Positions 10,287-63,534 of a DNA stretch of 64,000 bases are shown here, piece after piece. The stretch is from Selaginella moellendorffii (lineage: Eukaryota > Plantae > Lycopodiophyta). The first letter of the stretch is position 1, and every line of letters starts with the position of its first letter. A program made the translations under genes and the position numbers. Under the pieces are notes generated by a model. The model saw only the letters and a list, made by a program, of their open reading frames with translations, was not told where the DNA came from and did no database searches. Location: NCBI RefSeq assembly GCF_000143415.4, contig NW_003314273.1, positions 2,480,719 through 2,544,718 of the forward strand, written 5' to 3'.

Positions 10287-10340
10287 TCCACGTAGTTTCC
10301 ACGTGGGCACTGTACAAAGCCCTTATCTCTAGCCGTTGGA
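10287..10340. promoter_or_regulatory. Candidate cis-elements upstream of the DUF639 gene: G-box CACGTG (10300-10305) and MSA-like TCCAACGGCTA (10330-10340, minus strand)
   Basis: Exact motif matches 70-110 bp upstream of the ATG; no functional evidence. Confidence 0.3.
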
Positions 10341-46718: not shown

Positions 46719-48521
46719 TCAGTGAACAAAAGTTTGAAAGACTCTCATCCCCAAGAACGAAGAATAGAGCACGAGAAGCCCAATTCCCAGCGCTCGACTG
46801 GGTTGCATCCTCCTCCCCGGAAGAAGTAGCAGCGTCCAGATCAATCCCACCACCAAGAAGCCAATGGTGTAGTACAAGCTTGGATCGCTGGGGACGACGA
46901 AGGACGCTGGATACGTCTTCAAGCTCGCGAGCAGCAGCGAGATCCCCAGCCCAACCAGAGTGTTAAACATCGGCCCCGCATAGCAGCCCGATACCGCCAC
47001 CTGAGCTCCATCACCTCCACTGAAAGCCATGGCGACGTTGGCCATGAGATCGCCCATCGAGTTCCCCCACGCCAGCACCGTCAAGCCCAGCAGCGACGAG
47101 TCGATCTCCAGGATTACCCCCAGGCTGACGAGAACCGCCACGAGCTCCTTGGCGATGATGTAGAACCAGACGATGCTCATGAGGAATCCTCCCACCACCC
47201 AGGGAAAGACGAAGCTCCGAGGAGGATGATCCGGGGTCGTGACGAAGAAAGCCGTCAGGCCGAGCACAGCTCCACTGCCAAATCCCCAGGAGTAGACGTA
47301 GAAGGCGCTGGAGGGCGAAACTCCGGCGCTCAGGAGGAACGCGAGGAGAACCGGAGCTAGAGTGACGCTCGCCACTGCCACCGGACGAGACCATCGCTTG
47401 TCCTCCACGAGAGGAATCGTGAGCTGCCTGGGAATAGTGAGCGGCCAGTCGATCACCATCTTGAAGAGCCTGTGGAGAAAGCTCTTCCAGTTCCGAGAAG
47501 ACTCGTGCTCCTCTTGCTGCTCGCTCCATCCCCAGAGCGGGCGGGGAACAGCCTCCTCGACTGGCTGCTGGTGCGCGTAGATCGCTACGTGAGAAGCCCA
47601 CCTCCACTGCGGCAACGTGATCTCGATCGGGTTGCTCGTCGCCCCGGAAGAATCCGGATCCATCAGCGGTGTATACCAGTTGTTCTCTGGATCCTCGTCG
47701 TGAACCACGGCTTGCATGGGCAGCCACCGTAGCTTGGATGCTTGCTTCTTGATCACCTCCGAGGCAGCCACAGTGACGGCATAGACGAGATAGATCGAGA
47801 CGAAGGCCACAGCTCCCCAGAAACTAATCCTCCCAACGTAGAGAATGATCGTGAGGATCGCGAGGGTGACAAGGAAGAAGCAAACGTCCCGGATGAAGCA
47901 GTGGCGATCGAGCTGGACGGAGCTGGAAGTTCTCCCGGCAGTGATCACGTAGACGAGCCCCGCCACCACGGAAGTCACGAACACAGCTCCTCCAAGAACA
48001 CTGTTTAGGCCAACTTCGCCAGCTCCAGCCCCCACGAAGGCCGCGATACTGGCGAAGACGTCCGGAGCTCCATTGCCGAGAGGGAGTAAGGAGACCCCCG
48101 CGACGGTGGGAGGGAGATGGAGCAAGCTGGAGAGCTTCTGGAGCGAGCAACAAAAGTAGTCGGCGGCGGTGTTGCCCAGCATGTAGAAGAGCGAGGCGAG
48201 CCAAATGCCCAGCAGCAAATGCCCCAGCCATGGGAGAGCTCCAAAGCGGCAGAAGAAGATCCGCGTGTAATCGATGGCGCCCCCCGACGCGCAGTCACGG
48301 GCGTGAGCCTTGACGAAGGAACACGCATCGTGAGATTTCCCTGGGCTGTCACAGCCGCCGCTGCCGATCAAGTGATTTGGGGCGGCTGCCGGCTGCGCGA
48401 GCGCGAGATCAAGGAGCGCTCTTCCCCGCGAGTGGCTGCTTGCCGCGGGATTGGAGGGAATGCGCCCGGAGAGGAAGAGGAGAAGCACGGCCCACGAAGC
48501 CAACCCTAGAACGGACCTCAT
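46719..48521 (-). CDS. CCX: Cation/calcium exchanger (CCX, NCLX-like), intronless
   Basis: 600 aa with alpha-1 (GNGAPD) and alpha-2 (GNSMGD) repeats diagnostic of CCX, and multiple TM helices. Confidence 0.95.
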   Translation of the reverse strand: MRSVLGLASWAVLLLFLSGRIPSNPAASSHSRGRALLDLALAQPAAAPNHLIGSGGCDSPGKSHDACSFVKAHARDCASGGAIDYTRIFFCRFGALPWLGHLLLGIWLASLFYMLGNTAADYFCCSLQKLSSLLHLPPTVAGVSLLPLGNGAPDVFASIAAFVGAGAGEVGLNSVLGGAVFVTSVVAGLVYVITAGRTSSSVQLDRHCFIRDVCFFLVTLAILTIILYVGRISFWGAVAFVSIYLVYAVTVAASEVIKKQASKLRWLPMQAVVHDEDPENNWYTPLMDPDSSGATSNPIEITLPQWRWASHVAIYAHQQPVEEAVPRPLWGWSEQQEEHESSRNWKSFLHRLFKMVIDWPLTIPRQLTIPLVEDKRWSRPVAVASVTLAPVLLAFLLSAGVSPSSAFYVYSWGFGSGAVLGLTAFFVTTPDHPPRSFVFPWVVGGFLMSIVWFYIIAKELVAVLVSLGVILEIDSSLLGLTVLAWGNSMGDLMANVAMAFSGGDGAQVAVSGCYAGPMFNTLVGLGISLLLASLKTYPASFVVPSDPSLYYTIGFLVVGLIWTLLLLPGRRMQPSRALGIGLLVLYSSFLGMRVFQTFVH

Positions 48522-52032: not shown

Positions 52033-52385
52033 AGGCCTCGATACTCCTCGCAAGGTTTGAATCACTTCCATGTTTTTATCATTGTCTTGACGATGGTTTG
52101 CTCGAATCTCCATTCCAGATGAATCATGGAAGTGATACTTATGGAAAGGTTTCCTTAATATTTTTCTTTTATGGATAGAGCTTATATAACTTTGGCCCTT
52201 TCTACTAATAGAAAGTACGCCGCCGGAGGAGCCCTAAAAATCCCACAAGTGCGAATGGTTGGACGGCCAGGATGCGCTGCGATTGGAGCTCGGCTATGGG
52301 GCGCCAAGGAAGGTGAAGTTTGGGACTCGAGGTGACAAGGCCGTGAAGATTGGTTCGTGGGTTTTAGGGGTTTAGGGCAACAGGG

Positions 52386-53469
52386 ATGCGGGAAATCCAT
52401 AGCGCCTTGCGCTGCCGCCAACTGCTGAGGAGTCATCGTCGCTTCTACTGCCTCGCGGCTTCCAAGCGTAAGTAAAAAGGAAAGAACAAATGGAATTTGC
52501 GCTGACAAGGGAGGTTTTCCTCGTGTTTGTAGAGATGAAGAACGCCGCGGAAGGGCGGCCGAAGAAGATCAAGTTTTTCGTGGGGAGCCAGAGGAGCAAT
52601 GTGGAGGCGCTCAAGCGAGAGAAGCACTTGGAAAACTCTCCTGGTGAGTTTTGAGAGCTGGGATCACTATGGAGAAACTATAAATTGTGGTTGTTGCAGG
52701 ATGGATCGAGGCTTTTTGTTCGCAGAAGGAGAACGATCTTTTCGTGAGAGTTGACACCGACTTCATCCGGGATCAGTTTAATCTCCACGGGCTTAGCAAC
52801 GAGGTCTTGGATTATCATGGATCTCTGCGTGACATCCTCGAGACGTACAGTAAGTTCTCAAGCTCTCTCGTTCTCACCCCCTCCTTGAATATTCTCGTTT
52901 TTCCAGGGGGGTATTTCGATGAAGAAGCGCAAAAGTTGTATGGTCTGATCCACAGGCGGTACATTCTATCCACCAAAGGACTCGAGGCCATGGTACGTTT
53001 TCTCACATCACTTATGAAACGCTTCTTTTGTTCATCATGTTTTTTTCTTCTCCTCTTGTCCAGGCGAGAAAGTTCAAGCACGAAGAGTTTGAAAAGTGCC
53101 CGAGATCCTGCTGCGAGGATCAAACTTGTCTTCCAGTTGGGCTCTCGGACGATCCAGGAGTGTCCACGGTTCGCTTCTTCTGCCCCCGGTGCGAAGACGT
53201 GTTTGATCCGATCGCCGTGCAACATCGAAGTAAGCAAAGTTCCTGTTGTTATCTTATCTTTCTCGCCATCGCTAAGATCTCTGTTCTGGATTCCAGGTGT
53301 CGATGGCGCATACTTTGGTCCCACATTCGCGCACTTGCTACTCCTGACGCATCCCATGGAAATCAAGCCCTGTGTCAAGCATCCATCGTCGTCTGGCTAC
53401 GTTCCTAGGATCTTTGGCTTTAAAATTCATAAACCATCCGCGTCTAGCGACGATATGGAAGTTGCTTGA
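52386..53469 (+). CDS. CKB: Divergent casein kinase II regulatory (beta) subunit
   Basis: WIEAFC...VDTDFIRDQFNLHGL, LYGLIHRRYI, zinc finger CPRSCC...CPRC, DGAYFGPTF and YVPRIFGFKIH. An upstream exon (52386-52467) splices in frame to 52533. Confidence 0.88.
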
Positions 53470-53670
53470 CAATCCAGTCGATTTTTTCTCATATTTTCCT
53501 GACGATCTTGTACTTATAATCGAGAAATCCACAGGGTAAAAAAAGGTTCCACAGAAGAAACTAGCCGTTAGTTCTTACGTTCTTACGTGGTTGTAAAAAA
53601 CTCTTTCCTAGCTAGCCTGTGTACAGTGGAGTTCTCTCCCCTTTCCCTTATTTTTCTCGAATCGAATCGA

Positions 53671-54315
53671 ATGGACAGCGCCAGAGGTTTTTGTGATCCG
53701 CGCTTCCATCACAGCCAGCGAGCTTTGGTGCCGAGATCACGACGAAGAAGCAGTCAAATTCGCTGCGCTGGTGGAGGAGATCACAGCCAAAGTTTCTTGC
53801 ATCGGCTAGGCGAGGCCTGGAGCGTTGTCTTGGGCTTACAATCGTCGCAGGTAGCTACAAGATTGCTCGTTTCCTGGTTTTTCCTCATCGCTTGTTCGTT
53901 CTTTCCAGGCCGGGACGAGGAGAGTCGCCAAGCAGAGATTTTCCAAGCTTCTCGTCACTGACAGAGGCTTCGACGCCGAGAAGCTCTCGCATTTCTACAG
54001 CCTGGTAAGCAAGCAAGCTTCTCAAGATTAGAACACAAGCTAGAGACTTAGAACACAAGAGCTAGAAACTTACAAGTTTTCTTGTACCAAAGGCAAAGGC
54101 GGCCATCTCGGAGCACGTAGTTCTCGAAGACAAGCAGGTAACTCGTTGATAGAGTAGCGTTTTCATTTCCAAAGTGACGATGGATCGAACAGGGAAAAGC
54201 CACAGTCGAAAGACTCGGGGAGTTGCAACTCCAGTTCAACGTGAAGAGGATAAAGAGTTCCGCGCAGAACGAGCCTTGGGCGGTGCCGACGCTGATCGAG
54301 TACGAGCCGGAGTGA
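53671..54315 (+). CDS. Divergent MinE-like plastid division protein (exons 53671-53850, 53909-54004, 54093-54137, 54193-54315; 147 aa)
   Basis: Transit-peptide-like N-terminus, then SFLHRLGEAWSVVL...RRVAKQRFSKLLVTDR...AKAAISEHVVLE...FNVKRIK. This parallels plant MinE1 (SFLERLNLAWKIIF...RIAKQRLKMILFSDR...ALSDFVEIE...VPVRRVK). Confidence 0.7.
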
Positions 54316-54498
54316 GAGATCTGCTAGAGGGCGGTGAATCACCTGTGTACACAAGTTTCTAAAAGAAAGTTACCATTGTCGATCTAGATATTCACAAGCT
54401 TAGAGATCGAGAAAATGGATTCTGCTCATCAAACCTGTGTAGCCAACCTCTGTTTTTTTTTCCATCGCGGGCTTGTTAAGTACAGGGAGAACTCGCGA

Positions 54499-55017
54499 TC
54501 ATCTCTTCTCTGGAGCGCAAGTTGTGCTCTTGGGACGCTTGTGATCCCCGAGAGGCGAATCGGTGGCCGAGCGCTTCAACTTGAGCTGCTTGCATACACT
54601 CGAGTGAGTGATGAATGAATCATAGCATTGATCGGGAAGAACTTACCTTGTGATCGGCTTTTTGATAGAAGTGCCTCAGCAAAATGTTGGTAGCTTCAGT
54701 GGAGATGACTGCAAAGAAAGCAAAGTTAGCTCAAATTCGCGAAGCTATGGTGATGGTTACCTTGATCCGCCGGAGGCATCGTCCGGTCGTGAGTAGCGTG
54801 ATAAGTGAGCGGTGTGAGTTGCTGCAAAAAAAAAAAGAAAAAAAAAAAAGAAATGGTGGTCAGTCAAGCAAGAACAACGAAGAAAACACGAAGAGAAGAA
54901 AAACCGAAGAGAAAATGCTCGTCGATCTCTTACGGAGCGATGAGAAGGATCCGATGGTCTCAACTGGCTGAAATTGTGCGGGTTGTACGAAGGAAGATCG
55001 CCCAGCAAGGAACCCAT
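54499..55017 (-). CDS. DDA1: DET1- and DDB1-associated protein 1, 4 exons
   Basis: [24 protein letters not shown]...[31 protein letters not shown]...LKRSA...KRPK. Confidence 0.93.
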
Positions 55018-61934: not shown

Positions 61935-63534
61935 TGCATGTTCGTGGCATTAGAAGTTTATAAAAGTTATGTTTGTTAAACTTCTCCGAGTTCTTGAACC
62001 AAACTGGTTGATAAATCATCTGCTCTTTCATAGTACCTCAGAAACGTTTAGAACCATCGCGATGGAGCCCGAGGTTCCAAGAGATCTGCATCTTTTCATC
62101 CACCACCGAGTGCTTCTTGAACGATCCAGAGCGAGACGCGGTTTGGTGTCAAGGGCGAGACGATCAAGTGCGAGATCAACTCATCTAGAACCCGTCCTCC
62201 TAACTCCTAAATCCGCCTCGAGCAGCGAGAATCTCGTCCAAAATGCCATGCTTATCAAATTCAAAGTAGAGTTTAAACTGTTTATAATACTGTTTTGATA
62301 TGGATACATATATTTTTCGAGCCATTGGATTGAAACAGCATAGTTTAGAATATAGCCATCAATCGGCATTATGGAATAGACAGGACTGCCATAGTGGATC
62401 ACATTCTAGTTTGGGCTTGCATTGCTTCACCAGCCACTGCACAATAGAAACTACCCCTGCAAAATCAGTGATCCACTCTGAATTGAAAGGAGATGGAAAA
62501 CATATATCTTAGATGTACCACCACCGCTAACACTGAATTTACCAACAGGAATCAACGTCCATCAATGACTTGTGATATGCATTACATATTTGCTCTAATA
62601 TATTAATTATAACATTTTGTACTTAGTGAAGGATATTAGTATTAGCCACAACCACACCATCAACATCCACTATAATATAGTTTGATGGAATACAAAATAA
62701 TTTAATATTAAAAACAAAGTACCATATGCAAAGTTGTCTAAATTTTTTAATTAATTATTTTACACATAAATATTAAATATAATAATGCAATGTTGCATTA
62801 ATATAAAAGATTAACTAATGTTAAATATAATTAAATATTTTCGGTCACTTAGTAATTAAATCACTTCAACATTTTGGATAAGTTTATTTTAAGTTTTCCA
62901 ATATTGTAAATGTAGTTACAAAATTAATTATGTCAAAAGTAAAGATGTTTATAATATTGCAACCTGAAAGTGTAAATCTTGACCTTTTTCTATGTAAAAA
63001 AGTCTTTGCAACCATATCCACTGTAGTATTTGAATATATAGATTCTTCATAAGTTGTGAATAAATCTTTGCTCAAAATCAATCAAGCTAACTTTTATGTG
63101 TGGAAACAGTTCATACAAACCAAGTATAATATCATTGCTATGTCTTCACTGAAGTATTGGGCCAAAAGTTTAAACATAAGGGTAATAAAAGTCCAAGAAT
63201 CAAGCATTATATCTTTTTGTTGCATTCGTATGTAATTTATGGGGTTATAGGCCTACTTATCCAAAAAAAATTATTTCTTTTTAATGTATTCTTTTACATT
63301 ATAACCTAATCTAAGTACATTCTAACCGTTAGGTCATAAAATATGCTAAAATATACCTAGAAGTGTTTCAACTGTACATTTAGAATATACCTGAATATTC
63401 TAGCATACTATTTATAACCCTGCCAGTGATCAGAATTCTTCTCATCCCTTCATCGTTTTTTCTTTCCTCAGTGCCGATCAGGGTAGGTGAGTGAGTGAGA
63501 GACTTAGACAAGATCTTAGTAGCATCACATCAAG

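Follow-up and report, generated by a model that had tools for sequence, protein, structure and literature searches.

The stretch of Selaginella moellendorffii DNA analysed here (the window, 64,000 nt in all) carries an expressed, spliced and hitherto unannotated nuclear gene that encodes a small MinE-like protein. We propose that this gene probably specifies a very divergent paralogue of plastid MinE, one that would take an alternative or modulating part in the placement of the FtsZ ring. The evidence comes from splice joints in RNA, from the order and spacing in which the exons match a plant MinE profile, from a comparison of two alleles and from the residues that the protein keeps and loses relative to canonical plant MinE.

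Gene model and transcripts

The gene has four exons separated by three short introns, placed as follows (window coordinates).

53671-53850, + strand: exon 1, 180 nt, 60 aa
53851-53908, + strand: intron 1, 58 nt, GT..AG, phase 0; joint 53850/53909 in runs X1 and X2
53909-54004, + strand: exon 2, 96 nt, 32 aa; MinD-contact segment and start of the topological-specificity helix
54005-54092, + strand: intron 2, 88 nt, GT..AG, phase 0; joint 54004/54093 in run X2
54093-54137, + strand: exon 3, 45 nt, 15 aa; AKAAISEHVVLEDKQ, end of the helix
54138-54192, + strand: intron 3, 55 nt, GT..AG, phase 0; joint 54137/54193 in runs X1, X2 and X5
54193-54315, + strand: exon 4, 123 nt including the TGA, 40 aa; putative beta hairpin and short tail

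Every exon length is divisible by three and the spliced open reading frame runs to 147 aa. A sequence-only reading of the window had proposed four phase-0 exons giving a protein of this length at 53671-54315 on the + strand, and its model is borne out by the sequence together with the RNA-derived joints; the exon 2 motif that it quoted, RRVAKQRFSKLLVTDRG, is present in the exon 2 translation, AGTRRVAKQRFSKLLVTDRGFDAEKLSHFYSL. The GC content is 0.56-0.58 in the exons versus 0.38-0.45 in the introns. There is no upstream ATG between 53554 and 53671, and the window holds no repeated or introner-like copies of the three introns.

Splice joints were read from RNA-derived Logan contigs of four runs from four studies, aligned to positions 53300-54800. 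All three modelled introns are removed in RNA, at GT..AG joints on the + strand seen in runs of different studies, and we regard the exon model as transcript-backed because these three joints appear in RNA-derived contigs. Expression extends beyond these runs: 20 public runs belonging to eight studies contain roughly half or more of the words sampled from 53600-54400. Logan contigs are strandless, and overlapping transcripts may be merged in them.

The public annotation used for comparison was that of GCA_000143415.2, scaffold GL377577.1, anchored to the window by an exact match of the 600-aa cation-exchanger ORF at 46722-48521 (- strand). It places no gene between the two neighbours of the MinE-like gene, CK2-beta and DDA1. 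Nor was any protein of 53-168 aa found that shares three 5-residue words with exon 1. A HMMER pass with exon 2 over 1.84 billion cluster representatives, drawn from a collection of 15 billion proteins, gave no genuine match, and no close orthologue over exon 2 from another species was found in this collection. The sole match to exon 2 (P0001, E = 2e-9) was rejected as spurious, its score being summed over repeats: this protein of 1,963 aa consists of about 15 near-identical PDZ-like repeats, and short queries set against repeat proteins yield false positives of this kind.

Homology to plant MinE

Standard family models stay below threshold on every exon, and the assignment to the MinE family that we propose rests on exon-wise profile statistics. 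When the exons were run separately against Pfam, exon 2 matched MinE (PF03776) and nothing else, at 12.3 bits (E = 0.17, profile positions 1-18 of 68), the gathering score of this family being 25 bits. Exons 1 and 4 had no Pfam match, exon 3 being too short for the tool, and an NCBIfam scan of the exons returned nothing. Exon 2 retrieved no MinE from the PDB sequences, only a lone chance LYR-like match at E = 1, and nothing usable from a feature search of the ESM Atlas.

Profiles were therefore built from collected MinE sequences rather than taken from curated models. A degenerate DNA pattern for RL[KQ]LVLAHDR recovered 120 genome loci, nearly all of them cyanobacterial minE. A second pattern, for AKQRLKxILxSDR, recovered 54 loci from JGI metagenomes, 52 of which are plant MinE genes or cDNAs spanning Arabidopsis-like, poplar-like, grass, conifer-like, fern-like and moss-like sequences. 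Metagenome contigs of this source carry many host-plant nuclear genes and cDNAs. The other two of the 54 loci, L153 and L155, encode bacterial sigma-70-type factors in which AKQRLKEILLSDR occurs by chance. Word searches that started from a conifer-like MinE cDNA and from its core added about 200 further plant MinE proteins. Two plant profiles were made, from 34 and from 225 non-identical MinE cores, the set of 225 being without lycophyte sequences, along with a cyanobacterial profile from 94 MinE sequences.

The scoring covered 2,466 segments: the four exons and all 2,462 stretches of the window that are free of stops in a six-frame translation. With both plant profiles the two best segments are exon 2 and exon 1, and the best unrelated segment of the window reaches 4.7-5.0 bits. 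The matches fall on the plant profile as listed here.

Exon 1: profile positions 5-23 or 5-24, membrane-targeting helix, 6.4-6.9 bits
Exon 2: profile positions 32-47 or 32-48, MinD-contact segment, 7.3-7.7 bits
Exon 3: profile positions 64-72, ALSDFVEIE, weak, about 0 bits
Exon 4: profile positions 95-107, VPVRRVKPEYQ, weak, 0.1-0.7 bits

Successive matched blocks are separated by 7, 15 and 18 residues, where the plant profile has 8, 16 and 23, and the four exons lie on diagonals -34, -33, -32 and -27. Their summed score is 14.6 bits, a value that none of 3,000 per-exon shuffles attained (null mean -4.6, maximum 3.5); in none of the 3,000 did all four best matches fall in a single diagonal band. 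Against the helix and hairpin, exons 3 and 4 score about 0 bits each, with P values of 0.08 and 0.025 against shuffles, and they share the diagonal. Alignment with MAFFT, in which the exons were entered as separate fragments, set exon 1 on the membrane-targeting helix, exon 2 on the contact motif and exon 3 on the end of the helix, with the tail of exon 4 falling on VRRVK...ITNVEY. The MinE-like core that had been read from the letters thus recurs in the profile comparison, the four exons matching in order and with the expected spacing, and with the helix and contact motif kept.

The cyanobacterial profile scores the individual exons at only about -3 to 3 bits. Summed single-sequence scores reach about 10 bits for the best plant sequences and at most 0.6 for the best cyanobacterial one. 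Because the cyanobacterial profile scores low and the membrane-targeting helix is of the plant type (R-L-x-x-A-W, as against the cyanobacterial L-L-E-R-L-F type), descent of the gene from plant nuclear MinE is in our view well supported, as opposed to a separate bacterial acquisition.

Parts of the protein

Residues 1-38 form a presequence-like N-terminus rich in Arg and Ser (8 Arg, 5 Ser, 3 Asp). Its Arg content would equally suit a mitochondrial presequence, and the compartment to which it would direct the protein is uncertain. The predicted amphipathic membrane-targeting helix (MTS) follows at residues 41-55, SFLHRLGEAWSVVLG, within exon 1, with a maximum hydrophobic moment of 0.55 over residues 40-51. 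SFLHRLGEAWS, within this helix, shares 9 of its 11 residues with SFLERLGRAWS of the bryophyte-type MinE P0147. As is characteristic of the MinE family, the helix stands directly upstream of the MinD-contact segment, at a distance of 7 residues versus 8 in the plant profile.

The contact segment, RVAKQRFSKLLVTDRG / VAKQRFSKLLVTDR, is encoded by exon 2 and keeps the A-K-Q-R..D-R pattern: its A, K, Q, R, L42, D and R agree with the plant consensus. It departs from that consensus at the L22-equivalent position, where Leu is replaced by Phe, and at the I24-equivalent position, where Met is replaced by Lys. Exon 4 supplies a putative hairpin, ATVERL-GE-LQLQFNVKRIK, whose alternating L-x-L-x-F-x-V would be compatible with the last strand of the topological-specificity domain. 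The protein ends in a tail, TLIEYEPE, of which TLIEY aligns with ITNVEY(KD) of seed-plant MinE.

Divergence from canonical plant MinE

The general plan of the AtMinE1/ARC12 type of MinE is shared: a nuclear gene, a putative N-terminal presequence and a helix with F-x-x-R-L-x-x-A-W. As in plant MinE, 7-8 residues then lead to A-K-Q-R-x-x-x-x-L-x-x-D-R, followed in the same order and spacing by a predicted A-x-S-x-x-V-x-x-E helix, a putative hairpin ending in V-[KR]-R-[VI]-K and a T-x-I-E-Y tail. Some traits are also held in common with cyanobacterial and E. coli MinE, namely a small presumed mature protein (about 105-110 aa), a membrane helix near the N-terminus and an A-K-x-R-[hydrophobic] contact motif; the putative hairpin has a short loop, much as in E. 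coli MinE.

Within this plan the sequence has changed extensively. Of 57 HMM-aligned positions, 23 (about 40%) carry the residue most common among plants and 38 count as similar, identity being lower over the whole core. Residues invariant in all 225 plant cores are altered at F20L, P21G, L38F, M40K, I41L and C47G, and further along at L65I, F68H, E70V, P96N, V100I and Y104A. The protein had been described as highly divergent, and these changes do place it far outside the variation of canonical plant MinE.

Lengths were compared with 94 full-length plant MinE proteins, whose median is 230 aa as against 147 aa here. Ahead of the MTS, plant MinE has a median of 95 residues (range 58-193) whereas the MinE-like protein has 41. 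After the RRVK-type motif, the plant median is 41 residues (range 28-111), compared with 19 after the corresponding KRIK. Of the roughly 40 residues that make up the plant C-terminal extension, nothing but the opening motif (TLIEY here) is retained, and the terminal G-S-V-D-V-R-F-D-F part (V-D-[VI]-R-F type) is missing. The earlier suggestion of a shorter topological-specificity region is partly right: the hairpin region has 5 residues fewer than in the plant profile, and the protein ends 19 residues past KRIK, versus a plant median of 41. Gene structure differs as well. In 52 of 52 plant MinE loci, some of which are cDNA and so uninformative, a single open frame without interruption spans the core (MTS to stop codon), whereas the MinE-like gene carries three phase-0 introns within the core.

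Since invariant residues, C-terminal extension and uninterrupted core all fail to conform, we do not file the gene as a canonical MinE1. As judged from its sequence, it is a strongly remodelled variant of the MinE family.

Constraint between two alleles

A contig of run X5 represents a second allele or strain of the gene. It differs from the window at five coding positions, each of which changes an amino acid (G6A, S23L, Q29R, S59T and Q60E) and affects either the presequence or the linker that follows the MTS, and it has an 8-nt deletion within intron 1. The MTS and exons 2-4 show no difference, and the ORF and splice sites are intact in both alleles. Five changes in 180 nt versus none in 264 nt correspond to a P of about 0.01 under a uniform rate, which mildly suggests constraint on the MinE-like core and drift of the N-terminus.

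Chance, remnant or additional copy

That the resemblance to MinE has arisen by chance, the locus giving rise to an unrelated small protein or to a non-coding spliced transcript, would be in keeping with single-exon scores that are each weak (at most 7.7 bits) and nowhere above a curated threshold. We nevertheless hold this to be extremely improbable: four independent exons fit the order and spacing of the plant profile, neither the sum nor the common diagonal is matched in 3,000 shuffles, no other segment among the 2,466 of the window outscores exons 1 and 2, and MAFFT sets the separate exon fragments on the same MinE motifs. A more serious alternative, which we consider somewhat unlikely, accepts the descent from MinE and places the product outside the Min system, either as a decaying transcribed copy whose ORF is intact by chance or as a protein recruited elsewhere that keeps only the membrane helix. 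Identity of about 40% to the commonest plant residue over 57 aligned positions, and less over the whole core, is what such a duplicate might show, as are the many altered residues that are invariant in 225 plant MinE, the lost C-terminal extension and shortened hairpin, and five of five allelic coding differences being non-synonymous. To these may be added that protein searches found neither an annotated product nor an orthologue and that the gene is covered by an antisense 3'UTR. This alternative is, however, harder to reconcile with a four-exon ORF and three correctly spliced introns that are intact in two alleles, with exons of GC 0.56-0.58 set against introns of 0.38-0.45, and with allelic changes that spare the MTS, the contact segment and exons 2-4 (P about 0.01, uniform rate). 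It also has to contend with the retention of functionally central residues in both segments, F, R-L and A-W in the MTS and A-K-Q-R and D-R in the contact segment.

The sequence-only reading had left a choice between a second, diverged MinE paralogue and a fast-evolving MinE. Table S1 of Miyagishima et al. 2014 (PMC4015805) gives four BLAST-derived MinE entries for S. moellendorffii under the identifiers GI 302768475, 302761908, 302786540 and 302791389; they might, for instance, represent two loci, each present in two haplotypes. Because the window locus is without an annotated product and its exon 2 is absent from the protein collection, these entries are most likely other, recognisable MinE genes, with the window gene an additional divergent copy. 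In the literature searched, Table S1 of PMC4015805 is the only statement on Selaginella MinE copy number. No Selaginella-named MinE occurs among the best 120 of 580 matches or the best 120 of 221 matches, as might be expected if this were the sole true Selaginella orthologue, fast-evolving and with no extra paralogue beside it, yet the absence of a name from the best 120 of each set means little. Against a sole orthologue stand the four entries of Table S1 (PMC4015805), which most likely represent other genes given a window locus that has no annotated product and an exon 2 that is unmatched. We judge a sole orthologue to be very unlikely, and of the two options the 'second, diverged paralogue' fits the entries of Table S1 and the unmatched exon 2 better.

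Proposed mechanism and significance

For a divergent paralogue of plastid MinE, we envisage the following sequence of events. The short Arg/Ser-rich presequence would bring the MinE-like protein into the plastid, where the membrane helix would bind the inner envelope. The contact segment would bind MinD and stimulate its ATPase. A minimal domain of helix plus hairpin would mediate dimerisation, for which canonical MinE is a possible further partner, and the protein could in this way serve as an alternative or modulating MinE in the placement of the FtsZ ring.

One substitution suggests how such a protein might differ from its canonical counterpart. In an alignment that included E. coli MinE (K-12 record) for the mapping of I24, the I24-equivalent residue is Met in 225 of 225 plant sequences, Leu or Phe in four aligned cyanobacterial sequences and Lys in the MinE-like protein. 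The E. coli I24N variant is locked in the reactive conformation (PMC5939084). The Lys found here resembles I24N in placing a polar or charged residue at this position, a likeness that we offer as an analogy only. Because of this Lys and the missing plant C-terminal extension, the MinE-like protein may be less able to reach the latent closed state and may be more constantly reactive. The changes at invariant residues could equally mean that MinD or dimer functions have been lost.

In Arabidopsis, the number and size of chloroplasts depend on the dosage of MinE and MinD, and loss of MinE1 in arc12 leaves one or a few giant chloroplasts. Single giant chloroplasts are described for some cells of many Selaginella species (PMC10784399). 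A hidden minimal MinE variant that is constantly reactive in particular cells could tip the balance of MinE and MinD so that FtsZ rings are suppressed or form in the wrong place, which would in part account for the single giant chloroplasts seen in the epidermis and meristems of spikemosses, a speculation that we regard as quite unlikely to be correct. As an expressed, unannotated and strongly remodelled copy of MinE in the model genome of the lycophytes, the gene is nonetheless a concrete candidate for lineage-specific control of plastid division, and surveys of the annotated proteome would undercount the Min components of S. moellendorffii. If the gene is only a decaying duplicate, what is left is an annotation correction of modest interest.

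Antisense RNA and neighbouring genes

The MinE-like gene lies in a compact setting, the features of which are these.

52272-53469, + strand: CK2-beta (casein kinase II beta, PF01214), public annotation; upstream neighbour
53562-53571, - strand: MSA-like motif CTAACGGCTA, exact match to CYAACGGYYA, 100 nt upstream of the ATG
53554-54498, - strand: antisense RNA covering the entire MinE-like gene, spliced at 54002-54073 and polyadenylated at 53554
54499-55017, - strand: coding sequence of DDA1 (PF10172), public annotation; convergent, downstream

The antisense RNA is recognised by a CT..AC joint at 54001/54074 (runs X1 and X5), which corresponds to a minus-strand intron at 54002-54073, and by a loose end in run X2, made up of adapter and poly(T) and lying before 53554, which marks where a minus-strand RNA is polyadenylated. 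There are also contigs that continue into the exons of DDA1, and the simplest reading is that the antisense RNA is a long spliced 3'UTR isoform of this convergent gene. The isoform and the MinE-like gene possibly constitute a natural antisense pair. With its intron more than 400 nt past the stop codon, the isoform has an arrangement typical of targets of nonsense-mediated decay.

On the other side, the stop codon of CK2-beta is about 200 nt ahead of the MinE-like ATG, and some contigs bridge the gap. Its 3'UTR possibly overlaps the end of the antisense RNA or the 5' end of the MinE-like mRNA. We considered whether the + strand introns could belong to a read-through 3'UTR of CK2-beta and find this unlikely in view of gaps in X2 and X3 coverage between the end of CK2-beta (about 53435-53568) and the MinE-like gene, though the contigs are strandless.

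The MSA-like motif CTAACGGCTA that had been noted upstream of the gene is present at 53562-53571 on the - strand, and we treat it as a consensus match only. CYAACGGYYA has three matches in the window versus 0.31 expected, and two of 100 shuffles reach three. A distance of 8 nt separates the motif from the position at which the antisense RNA is polyadenylated. The other exact matches are at window positions 10330-10339 and 63323-63332 (- strand).

Elsewhere in the window, the public annotation contains two overlapping models.

About 46719-47529 (10993-11803 of L175), - strand: helicase/exchanger overlap, public annotation

Here a 1,240-aa DEAH-type helicase is modelled from a start within the intronless 600-aa Na/Ca-exchanger ORF. 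Both lie on one strand and overlap by 810 nt; the first exon of the helicase is probably mis-modelled.
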